A DNA stretch of 64,000 bases from Octopus sinensis (taxonomy: Eukaryota), in NCBI RefSeq assembly GCF_006345805.1, contig NC_043000.1, positions 21,390,001-21,454,000 of the forward strand, in the 5' to 3' direction. Below the pieces are notes generated by a model. It searched no databases, was not told where the DNA came from, and saw only the letters and a program-made list of their open reading frames with translations. Each line of letters opens with the position of its first letter. Position 1 is the stretch's first letter. Shown piece after piece: positions 2,467 through 63,268 of this stretch. Made by a program: the position numbers and the translations under genes.

Positions 2467-2627
2467 TTCTCAAGGGTTAATGGCTCAGACATTTACAAAA
2501 CCAGGAGTTTATTACTATTCGGATCAAGACAAACAATTTTCAGCTGACATCATTGGTACAATTATCGTCAAATCCAAACCAAAAGATCATCATGTTAAAG
2601 TCAATAACCAAACTGGTTTCATTTGTG
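2467..2627 (+). CDS. Internal exon A of cupredoxin-repeat/FN3 gene (phase 2->1): SQGLMAQTFTKPGVYYYSDQDKQFSADIIGTIIVKSKPKDHHVKVNNQTGFIC
   Basis: ttttctctttccag acceptor; G|gtgagt donor; open frame; F..PGVYYYS...GTIIV cupredoxin-like C-terminal motif; phase matches exon B. Confidence 0.9.
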
Positions 2628-3930
2628 GTGAGTTTTTTGCTGTTCTTTTGATTTTTTAATATAATTTAGACAGTAGATCTTGACACAGCCATCTAACTTG
2701 CTAGCTCCAGTCAAACTGTTCAACGCATGCCAACATGGAAAGAGGACATTAAATGGTGGTGTTGATGATGATGATGATGATGAGAATTTTGTGGTCAATA
2801 CAGAATGATGATAAATTACCATGTAGACCAGTGAGAATCAAAACAATGACATGTGTGTTCATTCTCCATGTTTTCCAGCAGATTTGAATGTAAATATTAT
2901 AATCACCGTTGTATTTCCCCTTCAGAGAATGCCTTTTCTTATCAAACAATATATGCTGGCAGCAACTCAAGTCGTTGATATAAGGGGACTTTAAGACACC
3001 AGTGTTTCAACCTGGTTGTGTCTCTTCAGTAAAAGCTACGCCTTAATCAATGAAGCTAAACAAGAATGATAGCTCTTGTTTATTTAATTCAGCAAAGAAA
3101 TTATTTGCTAGTGTATGTTGATATCTACGAAACATATAACAAATTATCATGTGCACATAGAACAATGAAAATCAAAACAATGATGTACTTATTCATTGTT
3201 AATACCTTCTGGCAGATTTGAAAGGGAATATGTTAATCACTATTGTATTTCTCCTTCAGAGGACATGTTCTCTTTTTCAGATGATGCATGTTGGCAACAC
3301 ATTTGACTCATTGCTGTAAGGAGACTTTGAAACACTTGTGTTTCAACTTGGTTTTCTCTCTTCAATTGAAGCTACTCCTAAGTTGATGAATTGTGGTTCT
3401 TTTTTATAGAATTAAGCAAACAAATTATTTGCTGATTCATGTTGATATCTACCAGACATATAATAAATTATCATGTACATGTAAAACAACAAAATTCAAA
3501 ACAACTATGTACATATTTATTGTTAATAAATTCTGGCAATGTCAGTCATTGCTGCATTTCTCTGTTCTCTTTTCAGATGATAGGATAGGTATTGACAATT
3601 CACTTGATTCATTGCTATAAGGAAACATTGAAACACCTGTGTTTCAACCTGGTTGCATATCCTCAGTCAAAACTATCCCTGGGTTAATGAATCTAAAAAA
3701 AAGAATCATGGTTTCTGTTTATAGAATTCAGCAAACAAATTATTTGTTGTCAATGAATCATGCATGTCAACAACACACTTCATCTAATAATGTAGCTCTA
3801 GATTACACTTTCTCAGAAAGAAGACAAAAGAAACCCACTTTATTGTCTTCAGCCAAAAGTTTTCTGAGTCAAGCCTAAACAACAAATTAAAGAAATGGTA
3901 ATGAATATTTGTATTTAACTTGTTTTCCAG

Positions 3931-4062
3931 ATTTACTGCGATTAGAAACAAATGACCGAATCTGGTGGAACTGGATAGACAAAGACAACAAAATAAGCAG
4001 CTTCAATGAATTAGACAGATATATAAACCCTGTTGTAAAGCAACCATTACTATGTTGCATAG
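3931..4062 (+). CDS. Exon B (phase 1->1): DLLRLETNDRIWWNWIDKDNKISSFNELDRYINPVVKQPLLCCI
   Basis: tgttttccag acceptor; AG|gtaagt donor; 132 nt; 'L.LETNDRIWWNW' matches the G-D-x-V-x-W motif of the repeat. Confidence 0.9.
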
Positions 4063-7000
4063 GTAAGTCATATAACACCTCTCACTATAGATCACTAATG
4101 AAGCTCTTCTATGTATAAATTCCATCTCTGAAACATTCACAACAAACTTCTAATCTCTCACCTCTGCTAGTAATTGTCATTTATAGTGAATTAGAAAAAT
4201 CATTAGAACATGACAAATTGTCTTGCGGGTATCAAGTTATGATCCCTTGCATTCTGAGTTCAGATCCTGCTGTGGTTAACTTTGCTTTTTATCTTTGCAG
4301 GATCGATAAAATAAAATATTAGCCAAGCATTATCATCTTAAGGTATGAGCATTCTGAGCAGTTGCCCAGAGGTCTCATGGGTTAAGGGGCCCAATTCTGG
4401 TCTATTTATGCTGTAGCTTACTATCAAAATATAAACTCAATAGGGCCTAGTGCATTGATTTACCTAGGGGTTTATAATACTGATCAGGCAGCTCTGCATC
4501 CAAGTACCAAGATTTTTATAATTCTTTCTAATATTGGAAAAGGTCAGAAATTTTCAGAAGCAGGGAACAACTCCAGTGCTCAACTGGTACTTATTTTATC
4601 AAACCCAAAGACATGAAATGCAAAGTCAAAACTCCCTGACACTTAGACTCAGAACAGAAAGAGCTGGAAGAAACACCACTAAGCATGGTAACAGTTCTGC
4701 TAGTTTGTCTCCTGCAGTTGTTATAATTAACTATTCCCTTTATTCCAAATTCCAGGTCTTAGGCCTATATAAGAAATCAATATTTAATTATGTTTTGTGG
4801 TCAAATTGTCAGTTTTGCTAATAGACTGGATTTGGAGAATTCATCTCTGTTTCTTTTCCGCTTTGAAAAACCTAGTATTTCTAGTTTTTTGCGTAAATTT
4901 CTCGATAGGTATGTATGTATGAATGTCATTATTCAGTTTTATTTCAAGATTTCTTGCCAATAGAAAAAGAGCCAGTTTTTAACCTACATCCAAGGTTCCT
5001 TCATTGCAATTTCAACAAAATCAACAAGATATTTTTTGTATGTATGTATGTATGAATGTATGTATGTATGTATGTATGTATGTATGTATGTATGTATGTA
5101 TGTATGTATGTATGTATGTATGTATGTATGTATATGTGCAGACTTGTAAAGTTTTGTTTTGTGTACATATAGTTGCATGTCTAGACAAGATCATATATAC
5201 TTATAAGATAAACTTCTGGAAAGTTTTACAGATTTTCACAGTTCCTGTGATTGCTTGGATCTCATCATCATCGTCGTCATTTAACATCCGCTTTCCATGC
5301 TGGCATGGATTGGACAGTCCTCAGTCTGACTGAGGATTGGCGGACCAGAAGGCTGCACCAGAATCCAATCTGATCTGGCAAAGTTTCTACAGCTGGATGC
5401 CCTTCCTAATGCCAACCACTCCGAGAGTGTAGTGGGTGCTTTTACATGTCACTGGCATGAAGGCCAGTCAGGCAGTACTGGCAACGACCACGCTCAAGTG
5501 GTGTTTTTTACATGCCACCTGCATAGAAGCCCGTCCAGCGGCACTGGCAATGACCACACTCAAATGTTGTTTTTCACATGCCACCGGCACAGGTGCCAGT
5601 AAGGCAATGCTGGCAACAATCACACTCAAATGGTGCTTTTTATGTGCCACCGGCACAGGAGCCAATCAGTGGGCCTGGCAACGATCATGCTCAGATGGTG
5701 CTTTTAACATTCCACTGGCACAGGTGCCAATCAGGCGGTACTGTCATCAGCCACGTCAGCGATTTTGATTTCACTTGCCTCAATAGGTCTTCACAAGCAA
5801 AGTTTATTGTCCAATGAATGAAGGATACTCATAAGTGGGCTGGTTATACACCACTGGCATAGGCCAGCTTTCTCCTTTCTGGTTTTGAGAAGCCTAATTT
5901 CTCAATATCGGTATTTAGACTGTGTGTTACACACAGTGAGATTGAACTTAGAATTATACTGTTGTGAAAAGAACTTCATACATGCCCCTGTTTATTCTTG
6001 TCTAAAGTTGAAAAGCTGCACTTAACCATAATCAGCTCAGCAGATATTTTAAATCTCTTCTAAGGTTCACTTCAAAGATGATTTCACATTCTTTAATTAT
6101 ACTGAGTTCATTTATGAATTTGATTTATTTTAATTAGTAGCTTCTTTATGTCATTACCTTATGTAATTATTGACATTGAACTAAAAATATATGGACTGTT
6201 TTTCAAGGAAGACTTCAAAAATAGCAAACCATTTTGTTTCTTGTCTTCTGAGCAGATAATAATAACAATAATAATAATAATGACAATAATGATAATAATA
6301 ATAATAATAATAATAATAATAATAATAATAATAATAATAATAATAATAATAATAATAATAATAATAATAATAATAATCATAAATGCAAATGCAAATAAAG
6401 GTAAAAATATAAATATATAGCGAGAACTCCAAAAAATCAATAGGTTTACTTTGTGTCTTGTCTGAAGAATAGATTTTAAAGAATATTCTATAGAATTAAG
6501 ATTGCTTTATTGGGGGATAAAAACCAAACAACTTCATTTTGGAAGCAAGAATTATTTAAGAAAGAAATAGGCATATGTATGATGATGTGAGGTTAAGAAG
6601 TTTGTATCACAACCATATGGTTTTGGGTTTGGTTCCACAACACAGCACCTTCAGCCAGTGTCTTCTACTATAGCACTAAACTGACCGAAGATTTATTAGT
6701 AGATTTGGTTAATGGAAACTGAAAGATGGCCATCATATATGTATGTGTAGCTATCTATTTTTCTTTCTTTCATTCTTTCTTTCTTTTTTCTTTCTTTCTA
6801 TCTATCTATCTATCTATCTATCTATCTATCTATCTATCTATTCATCTATCTATCTGCCAATCTCTCTACATATCAATCTGTCTACCTATCAATCTATCTC
6901 TATATCTATATATCTATCTATCTATTTATCTATCACTTTCTCTATCTCTCTATCTATATATCTATCTATCTATCTGTATATTTTTGTGTATATATATATG

Positions 7001-62599: not shown

Positions 62600-63050
62600 A
62601 CTGTCATCGTTGTCATCATCATCCTCATCATTTACATCCTTCTCCTCAACCTCATCCACCTCCTCAACCTCAACCACCTCCTCACCATCATCATCATCAT
62701 CATCATCATCATCATCATCATCATCATCATCATCATCATCATCATCATCATCACCATCATCATCATCATCATCATCACTGACTTCATCTACATCCTCCTC
62801 CTCCTCCTCACCATCATCATCATCATCATCACTGACATCATCTACATCCTCCTCCTCCACCTCTACCTCATCCTTCTCCTCACCATCATCATCATCATCA
62901 CTGACATCATCTACATCCTCCTCCTCACCATCATCATCATCATTATCACCATCATCATCATCATTATCACCATCATCATCACCATCATCATCACCATCAT
63001 CATCACCATCATCATCATCATCATGTTTATCATCATGATGTTCATCATCA
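62600..63050. repeat. (CAT)n/(CCT)n cryptic simple repeat immediately upstream of exon T
   Basis: Direct reading. Confidence 0.9.
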
Positions 63051-63097
63051 ATATTTACTGTCATATTTTATTTAAATATATTTTCGTTCTGCTCTAG

Positions 63098-63268
63098 ATG
63101 ATTCTGTGAAACCAATAACATCAAATGTCCTTGATATAAAGATGACTGATGTGATTAAATATTTAGAAAGGCTTTCACCCATTGAAAGAATGAATACATC
63201 AGAACCGTTCCTGGAATATATTACTGTAAAAGAAAATTCTGTCATGACCAATTCTTCACAATCTTCAG
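63098..63268 (+). CDS. Exon T (phase 1->1): D/N-DSVKPITSNVLDIKMTDVIKYLERLSPIERMNTSEPFLEYITVKENSVMTNSSQSS; gene continues beyond window
   Basis: ttcgttctgctctag acceptor; CAG|gtgagt donor; KPITSN parallels KPIESN ending FN3-1. Confidence 0.88.

Follow-up and report, generated by a model that had tools for sequence, protein, structure and literature searches.

In textbooks, plastocyanin-type cupredoxins are the proteins that carry electrons in bacteria, archaea, and chloroplasts. Tandem domains of the same type are encoded in a 64,000-nucleotide stretch of the Octopus sinensis genome (contig NC_043000.1, positions 21,390,001 to 21,454,000; the whole of this stretch is called the window below, and positions are counted from its first letter), where 19 exons specify part of an uncharacterized protein. 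By sequence profile (E 4e-7 to 1e-5), the octopus repeats are homologous to plastocyanin, amicyanin, and pseudoazurin as well as to Nmar_1307, the purple cupredoxin of Nitrosopumilus maritimus (5fc9), and with these blue copper proteins they share a Greek-key sandwich and the motifs F-x-P…G-x-x-V-x-W-x-W…HN-V…PG-x-Y-Y…G-x-I-x-V. However, the blue copper proteins are soluble carriers of ~100 amino acids, whereas seven tandem copies lie inside a giant multidomain eukaryotic protein in the present family, the C-terminal loop is without the ligands Cys, His, and Met, and no redox partner is evident.

Ceruloplasmin, hephaestin, and factors V/VIII likewise place several cupredoxin folds on one animal chain, and they were seen among our low-confidence whole-chain Foldseek matches, but they belong to the multicopper-oxidase lineage, are secreted, and arrange their domains in a triangular array. 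Described counterparts also exist for the other domains of the octopus protein. A beta-sandwich with the motif YYT-x-DG-S/T-x-P is common to the N-terminal domain of DZANK1 (11xu chain G1) and to bacterial Fn3_assoc/CHB_HEX_C_1 domains; however, the zinc ribbons and ankyrin repeats of DZANK1 are unrelated, a transition-zone role is assigned in a preprint to DZANK1 and not to this gene, and the bacterial CHB_HEX_C domains are located on secreted glycosidases. Titin and RIM-binding protein (RIM-BP) likewise contain intracellular FN3 arrays and are the best Protein Data Bank (PDB) matches of our FN3-pair profile, but their kinase, SH3, and Ig domains are absent from the present family, and the likeness is that of the generic FN3 fold only. 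We found no description in the literature of a tandem array of copper-ligand-less cupredoxins in a giant, apparently cytoplasmic protein. The family is without a name, a paper, or a solved structure; the gene itself is already predicted, and each of its domain types is known.

Gene Model and Support from Orthologues

The window is AT-rich eukaryotic DNA (GC 33-43%) crowded with microsatellites, short interspersed element (SINE)-like copies, and low-complexity open reading frames (ORFs), and for this reason prokaryote-style ORF lists are of little help and the gene needs to be assembled from short exons. Stop-free plus-strand segments were scanned for the motifs given in an earlier note on this DNA, AG acceptors with a polypyrimidine tract and GT donors were scored, and the candidates were chained by phase. 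Ab initio splice-site chaining alone gave 18 exons encoding 773 amino acids with no stop, and a 19th exon (3931-4062) was added through orthologue proteins (Argonauta). The final model thus comprises 19 plus-strand exons between positions 2467 and 63268, with a coding sequence of 2453 nt, 817 amino acids, and zero stops. Each exon (49-183 nt) is bounded by AG...GT with a polypyrimidine tract, all introns (mean length 3.2 kb) are GT-AG, all junction phases agree, and 36 of the 36 splice sites within the span are canonical. The earlier note had proposed 19 in-phase, stop-free GT-AG exons encoding a product of ~800 amino acids; our model was rebuilt independently of its exon list and arrived at the same exon number, the same start (2467), and the same end (63268), with a product of 817 residues.

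The first exon opens with one base of a split codon, and the last closes with one spare base followed by a gtgagt donor. Because the first exon starts and the last exon ends inside split codons, the gene extends past the window on both sides, and what the window covers is an inner segment of a gene that is far larger. The exons are as follows, with the repeats numbered R1-R7 after the full-length relatives and the basis of each exon given last.

Exon 1, 2467..2627 (+): C-terminal third of R3 (…FTKPGVYYYSD…IGTIIVKSKPKD) and start of R4 (HHVKVNNQTGFIC); acceptor ttccag, donor gtgagt, tblastn matches from six orthologues.
Exon 2, 3931..4062 (+): middle of R4 (DLLRLETNDRIWWNW…); Argonauta orthologue match at E 7e-16, splice sites present.
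Exon 3, 8247..8404 (+): end of R4 (…IGVYTYTVT…CTVIAKPAPK); splice scan, 77% identical to Argonauta.
Exon 4, 9538..9654 (+): N-terminal half of R5 (NHTIHITEDGYE…YVWWVWQNEKLPHNIVQ); splice scan, matched by seven of seven orthologues.
Exon 5, 16088..16200 (+): middle of R5 (VTYSYEPVQGGFNSG…FHTPGTYYYQ); splice scan, orthologue matches.
Exon 6, 17678..17726 (+): 49 nt, last strand of R5 (FPIKKIGVIQVTTQTQ); sole candidate with the correct phases, corresponding to Argonauta SFPIKKIGVIQVATQTQ.
Exon 7, 20477..20649 (+): N-terminal half of R6 (VQEVSVNIGDIRPDPIVINVNDIICWVFK…); splice scan, orthologue matches.
Exon 8, 21572..21644 (+): middle of R6 (RCIAKVLEKPGLFHFTSKSFLKQK); splice scan, orthologue matches.
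Exon 9, 26348..26464 (+): end of R6 (…LSTVIVDPVNDS) and start of R7 (TVVYVDNMGFHPQSVVLEK); splice scan, orthologue matches.
Exon 10, 27881..27949 (+): R7 strand bearing GQQVVWKWTEPHNIVHV; splice scan, orthologue matches.
Exon 11, 30956..31112 (+): C-terminal half of R7 (…SFNSGKAISNSQFCHNFYDPGEHTVIS…GSVTVIEN); splice scan, orthologues, spanned by the PDB plastocyanin alignment.
Exon 12, 35341..35510 (+): first half of an Fn3_assoc/CHB_HEX_C-like beta-sandwich, with YYTLDGTYP; splice scan, orthologues.
Exon 13, 39631..39737 (+): second half of the Fn3_assoc/CHB_HEX_C-like domain (VYDDECGIVFLQGGIHVIRVIAQCKGFQNSDVLNS); splice scan, orthologues.
Exon 14, 44935..45028 (+): Pro/Ser/Arg-rich linker; splice scan, orthologues, with the Argonauta model reading through its donor.
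Exon 15, 47107..47289 (+): linker with WKWWSC and first strands of FN3-1; splice scan, weak tblastn matches (E 0.004-0.06).
Exon 16, 52895..53047 (+): remainder of FN3-1; splice scan, orthologues, FN3 profile.
Exon 17, 55339..55497 (+): first half of FN3-2; splice scan, orthologues, FN3 profile.
Exon 18, 56900..56996 (+): second half of FN3-2; splice scan, collinear alignment over the exon 18/19 junction.
Exon 19, 63098..63268 (+): closing part of FN3-2 (SNVLDI), then the beginning of a weakly conserved tail; splice scan, collinear alignment.

In the 817-residue product, residues 1-40 are the end of a repeat, 41-150, 151-243, 244-345, and 346-439 are R4-R7, 440-537 form the YYTLDG domain, 538-591 the linker, and 592-776 the FN3 pair, after which the poorly conserved tail begins. 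The "about five" repeats counted previously agree with the four complete ones (R4-R7) and the C-terminal third of a fifth (R3) found here.

Seven orthologous proteins (from Argonauta, Solemya, Elysia, Pinctada, Mytilus, Ptychodera, and Anneissia) were compared with the 64-kb window by tblastn at E<1e-3, with the reversed window as a control. All 45 high-scoring segment pairs lay on the plus strand and inside the model exons; none fell off an exon, and none was obtained on the reversed control. Sixteen of the 19 exons were matched directly, and the other three are backed by collinear alignment over their junctions. The exon 18/19 junction, for example, is spanned collinearly, reading …YVEAIPR/NDSVKPITSNVLDI (NDS…) in the window and …YVAALPRE-SDQIKISNVLEV (SD…) in the orthologue. 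The Argonauta hians "uncharacterized protein LOC115211041 isoform X1" (804 amino acids) is 65% identical over the local search alignment and 71% over the full alignment; the Solemya and Elysia proteins are 35% identical, collinear, and of the same domain order over 99% of the query. A rough 343-residue concatenation of exon pieces had retrieved no homologue in the indexed search, whereas the full model did find them.

Short exons in a window rich in repeats and low-complexity ORFs are what might be expected of an artefact, with open segments that line up by chance or a pseudogene copy in decay. However, 817 codons run without a stop or frameshift through 36 canonical splice sites, the orthologue matches are confined to exons and do not occur on the reversed control, and conservation extends from Argonauta (71%) out to more distant animal relatives, leaving an artefact with next to no chance of being correct. 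It is virtually certain that the window holds a real conserved gene fragment with the folds named above, and the 19 exons are consecutive internal coding exons of an intact cephalopod protein-coding gene, the orthologue of "uncharacterized protein LOC115211041". The gene had been described in the earlier note as hidden and uncharacterized; uncharacterized it is, but because the Argonauta orthologue already carries the name LOC115211041, a predicted gene already exists and it can hardly be called hidden.

Public models of the orthologues are defective in several species, namely Argonauta (P0001), Solemya (P0002), Elysia (P0003), and Mytilus (P0005). The Argonauta model begins within repeat 1, and its end is a read-through of the donor equivalent to that of window exon 14 (…GPT/VRKSII, then a stop), the Solemya and Mytilus models are without part of repeat 4, and those of Elysia and Mytilus begin upstream of a conserved MG[SA]G[PA]SK. 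The public models in these four species are fragmentary or over-extended. For genome annotation, the window exons provide a clean template for the cephalopod gene.

Fold and Copper Ligands of the Repeats

The window protein matches the Pfam family Copper-bind (PF00127, plastocyanin/azurin) with 24.8 bits against a cut-off of 21.2, and its orthologues score 23.9-31.2 bits with PF00127 and 28-34.5 bits with PF13473. The repeats are mutually only 15-30% identical, and self-tblastn of exon pieces was too insensitive to detect sister repeats. A repeat profile built from 26 repeats of five species gave whole-domain matches in the PDB to 5fc9 (E 4e-7), plastocyanin (1.8e-6), and amicyanin (about 1.5e-5 to 2e-5). 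Argonauta R5, which is 86% identical to the window R5, was folded with AlphaFold2 from an alignment of 22 repeats; the model has a predicted local distance difference test score (pLDDT) of 93.4 and a predicted template modeling (TM) score of 0.82. Foldseek with this model placed 5fc9 first (TM 0.83, root-mean-square deviation 1.7 Å), followed by about 50 plastocyanins, amicyanins, and pseudoazurins, with the plastocyanins at TM about 0.7. The repeats are homologues of the plastocyanin-type blue copper proteins and have the same fold, a Greek-key eight-stranded beta-sandwich. The kinship with cupredoxins and plastocyanins put forward in the earlier note is borne out by the Pfam score above threshold, the PDB profile match at E 4e-7, and the TM of 0.83, and the AlphaFold and Foldseek check that it had recommended returned a cupredoxin sandwich, by way of the Argonauta R5 model.

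Two other affiliations were considered and rejected. No Cu-oxidase family occurs among the Pfam matches at E<=1, and the resemblance to multicopper oxidases is at the fold level only; the cupredoxin-like domain of molluscan haemocyanin FU-h had no search link to the repeats, which are plastocyanin-like by sequence.

To read the copper-ligand positions, we used the repeat hidden Markov model to align each repeat with two references, plastocyanin 1j5c and 5fc9. Three ligands are replaced throughout the repeats of the window protein and of the Argonauta and Elysia proteins: Cys has given way to S, V, T, D, L, or A; the C-terminal His to I, A, F, S, T, or E; and Met to I, Y, V, S, or H. The sole ligand left is the N-terminal His (HN motif), and this only in R2, R3, R5, and R7. 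With three of its four ligands replaced, the type 1 set His…Cys-x(n)-His-x(n)-Met is found in no repeat examined. Judged by these residues, the repeats are cupredoxin-fold domains and not blue copper proteins, and because the Cys, His, and Met ligands are replaced in every repeat, the array is most likely structural; we think it very probable that the repeats have a non-redox structural role.

A functional multi-copper electron-transfer protein, with plastocyanin-like copper binding or an altered ligand set that uses the HN His, can also be envisaged. Pfam Copper-bind is matched above threshold and environmental proteins with 8-9 tandem genuine plastocyanin domains exist, but no multicopper-oxidase family was matched here; and R5 and R7 (in the window) and R2 and R3 (upstream) still have the N-terminal ligand His, with a conserved H-x-C in the last strand of R2, but in all species examined non-ligand residues occupy three of the four type 1 positions of each repeat. 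We consider such an electron-transfer protein highly improbable, and a structural array is the reading retained below.

In R2 of the orthologues, which lies beyond the window, the N-terminal His is accompanied by a conserved His-x-Cys in the last strand (IHLCVV, WHMCIV, VHHCAV, or LHYCAI). By its sequence, this pair is a possible non-canonical metal site, in that repeat alone.

YYTLDG Domain, Linker, and FN3 Pair

The motif YYTLDGTYP lies in exon 12, and its T, D, G, and P are invariant across eight orthologues. The window protein itself scores below the Pfam thresholds for this domain (Fn3_assoc, PF13287, 19.5 against 23; CHB_HEX_C_1, PF13290, 13.1 against 22), but orthologues exceed both at the aligned position, with 31.4/25.6 bits in Solemya, 31.7/30.5 in Elysia, and 37.6/33.6 in Ptychodera; on that footing, the Fn3_assoc/CHB_HEX_C-like assignment made earlier is supported. 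An eight-species profile of the domain had a single significant relative in the PDB, the N-terminal domain of DZANK1 (11xu_G1, residues 26-102; E 6e-5).

In the linker, the motif W-x-W-W-x-C (WKWWSC in the window, exon 15) is invariant in seven orthologues. The FN3 domains (PF00041) score only 19.1 from the window sequence alone, against a Pfam threshold of 25, but a seven-species profile of the pair matched the structures of titin (2.8e-9), RIM-BP (8.6e-7), and fibronectin (1.5e-6), and the two FN3 domains of the earlier note are thus real. Pfam Ig_RIMBP2 was also matched in orthologues.

Relatives and Whole-Protein Architecture

A family profile made from three sequences was searched exhaustively against 1.84 billion representatives and gave 2147 matches, 50 of them below 1e-30. 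Names were looked up for 30 of the 2147, and the taxonomic range described here is sampled from these. Solemya velum (1276 amino acids) and Elysia marginata (1347) had come from the indexed search, and Pinctada and Mytilus were added by indexed profile search. The named relatives include Bulinus, Patella, Mytilus edulis, Macrostomum, Adineta, Priapulus, Hydra, and the sponge Sycon, together with Ptychodera flava (3697 amino acids), Anneissia japonica (3241), Diadema (4042), Intoshia (3004), the sponge Oopsacas (2851), and the choanoflagellate Didymoeca costata (1646). Full-length relatives span 1,646-4,042 amino acids, the shortest being that of the choanoflagellate. The Ptychodera and Anneissia orthologues have the accessions XP_070557721 and XP_033114658. 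As judged from these matches, members of the family occur in sponges, molluscs, and echinoderms as well as in a choanoflagellate. The earlier note had called the protein metazoan and had proposed a survey of its phyletic range; the survey also found a choanoflagellate relative, and because the family is present there it predates animals.

No vertebrate, insect, or nematode occurred among the 30 matches looked up, which are a sample and no proof of absence, and the absence of the usual model animals from them might explain why the family has not been studied. All 30 are named "uncharacterized", "hypothetical", or by a domain label, and a literature search on domain combinations found nothing relevant, nor did the relatives' locus tags occur in 8.3 million papers, in keeping with the previous statement that no characterized family was known to have this architecture.

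The full-length relatives share seven cupredoxin-like repeats (three more upstream of the four complete ones in the window), the CHB_HEX_C domain, and the FN3 pair; downstream come a long disordered region of acidic character and some twenty further FN3 domains, and the chain closes at its C-terminus with a thioredoxin-like domain. This last domain was matched by Pfam Thioredoxin_8 and Thioredoxin below threshold in four of the four species tested, and its profile matched StoA (1.3e-6) and thioredoxins (about 1e-4) in the PDB, a weak but consistent thioredoxin-fold match. At its active site, the choanoflagellate protein reads WCTPC (CxxC), whereas the animal proteins have WCLAS, WCLAA, or WCKSS (CxxS or CxxA). 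Within the C-terminal ~250 residues, the hemichordate and crinoid proteins have in common a cysteine-rich insert (…CCCAS…RHCC(S/C)CH…), which could be a metal- or Fe-S-binding or a palmitoylation site.

The best non-holozoan matches of the family profile are environmental proteins (P0108, P0170, and P0140) that likewise carry tandem plastocyanin-type domains (4-9 per protein), in one case also with FN3. They differ in being strong, true Copper-bind proteins (130-360 bits) and in having neither the CHB_HEX_C domain, nor the WxWWxC linker, nor the thioredoxin-like end. An ancient acquisition of the cupredoxin array from a prokaryote is possible.

Predicted Localization and Role

Full-length relatives all start with MG[TSA]G[ASCP]S (MGTGASK, MGTGASR, MGSGSSR, MGTGCST, MGSGPSK, and MGAGASA), and the same MGxGxS motif is found at an internal Met in the over-extended Elysia and Mytilus models; in all, it is conserved in nine species. 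The consensus for N-myristoylation is Gly2, a small uncharged residue 3, and Ser6, and MG[TSA]G[ASCP]S fits it as a candidate myristoylation motif. No hydrophobic N-terminus or signal peptide and no transmembrane-grade segment was found in the full-length relatives, and in the choanoflagellate orthologue, a WW domain (residues 17-43) follows right after the MGxGxS motif. The earlier note, having seen no signal peptide or transmembrane segment in the window, had left the localization unknown; the full-length relatives, likewise without either and with a myristoylation-type N-terminus, now allow it to be predicted. Because of the MGxGxS motif, the lack of a signal peptide or transmembrane segment, and the adjacent WW domain in the choanoflagellate, we infer a cytoplasmic protein anchored to the membrane by its N-terminus, and the balance tips slightly toward an intracellular, myristoyl-anchored scaffold.

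Alternatively, this could be a secreted or cell-surface adhesion or matrix protein, its beta-sandwich array acting outside the cell. FN3 and CHB_HEX_C are mostly extracellular domain types, and bacterial CHB_HEX_C-repeat proteins were the sole non-animal matches of the indexed search, but FN3 arrays occur intracellularly too (titin and RIM-BP were the best PDB matches), and the YYTLDG domain matches the cytoplasmic DZANK1. Conserved cysteines in the FN3 pair would suit such a protein, as would whole-chain Foldseek matches that include contactin, DSCAM, and ceruloplasmin (obtained with a low-confidence model), but the full-length relatives are without an N-terminal hydrophobic signal or a transmembrane-grade segment, and the polar MGxGxS N-terminus is conserved in nine species, with the WW domain beside it in the choanoflagellate. 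An extracellular location is, in our judgment, quite unlikely.

For the anchored intracellular scaffold, we propose the following arrangement. The cupredoxin-like array would form a rigid chain of beta-sandwich spacer or docking modules that takes no part in electron transport, the lipidated N-terminus would tether the giant cytoplasmic scaffold to the inner face of the membrane, and the thioredoxin-like domain would be held at the far end of the scaffold. Taken as a whole, i.e., a cupredoxin/CHB_HEX_C/FN3 gene in the window, a copper-less spacer array, and a membrane-tethered scaffold, this explanation is one that we hold to be reasonably probable.

Several points weigh against it. Both termini lie outside the window and the sole cephalopod relative (Argonauta) is truncated at both ends, so the N-terminal motif and the thioredoxin-like domain are seen only in non-cephalopod relatives. 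Proteins with FN3 and CHB_HEX_C domains are typically extracellular, and the FN3 pair carries several conserved cysteines (WxWWxC, KCP, QQCG, and RCKV…GGC) that may form disulfides. The conserved His of the HN motif may belong to another ligand set or metal site. The fold evidence comes from R5 of the Argonauta orthologue; the AlphaFold2 model of the full-length Argonauta protein is poor (mean pLDDT 52), and Foldseek with this whole-chain model returned generic multi-domain beta proteins at TM about 0.1, to which we attach little weight. Beside the exons of the splice-site and orthologue model, there may also be minor or alternative ones.

Three features of the proposed scaffold each suggest a testable property: the lipid-anchor motif (a tether), the degenerate cupredoxins (metal loss or a new surface), and the thioredoxin-like end (redox or monothiol activity). 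The evidence so far shows no unusual mechanism; it shows a conserved, ancient, and unstudied giant protein with an exapted redox fold. Should it be only a generic scaffold, it would still be a useful case of domain exaptation, although no surprise.

A more specific role can be sketched by analogy. Residues 3-5 after Gly2 are all small in the nine relatives, which at the sequence level matches the "USC" motif of high-affinity UNC119/ARL3 cargo, a kind of cargo that is delivered to cilia. Gly2 followed by small residues 3-5 has been reported to confer high-affinity UNC119 binding, and such cargo has been proposed to be released specifically at cilia or the immune synapse (PMC8246649). A 2026 preprint (10.64898/2026.06.11.731632) places DZANK1, the only solved relative of the YYTLDG domain, at the ciliary transition-zone doublet as a microtubule-associated protein. 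By this analogy, the protein might connect membrane and axoneme as a tether or ruler, in cilia or in the choanocyte collar, with a copper-less array perhaps derived from a prokaryotic multi-plastocyanin gene and a thioredoxin-like sensor end, a picture that we regard as rather unlikely.

Other Features of the Introns

The intron between exons 4 and 5 contains a transfer RNA (tRNA)-like element at 11388-11479 (-), which scores 40.5 bits with the Rfam tRNA model and received no ARAGORN call. By eye, it resembles tRNA-Lys(UUU) with a ~19-nt anticodon-loop insertion and several acceptor pairs that are wobble or mismatched, and TTTTT follows downstream; a tRNA pseudogene or the head of a SINE of tRNA origin is its probable identity. 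Two tandem arrays, both young and both producing periodic ORFs, lie just upstream of exons: one at 8485-9463 (253 bp x 3.9 copies, 98% identity) stops 75 bp before the exon 4 acceptor, and the other at 44065-44827 (100 bp x 7.6 copies, 95% identity) stops about 110 bp before exon 14.

Minus-strand ORFs at 32378-33748 and 33780-34572 (244 and 211 amino acids), in the intron between exons 11 and 12, resemble the C-terminal part of ORF2 of a non-long-terminal-repeat retrotransposon; they match Pfam zf-RVT weakly (21.6 bits, below threshold), and a 793-bp (TTA)n tract adjoins them. ORFs at 23079-23390 (-), 51426-51632 (+), and 53829-54344 (+) were labeled by eye as mariner-type transposase ends (…PYSPDIARLDFHLF…) and an apurinic/apyrimidinic endonuclease-like retrotransposon fragment; these labels are tentative, as Pfam found no family in these ORFs. 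A large share of the intron sequence consists of many copies, on both strands, of one SINE-like element with the translated signature …SFDCGHAGAPPLVEQI(D/N)PRTYS… and …SKLLTTQP(L/P)L…; examples recognized by this translated motif are the following.

13933-14285, 17909-18525, 21687-22209, 45631-45990, 54387-54879, and 61583-62059 (both strands): SINE-like copies.

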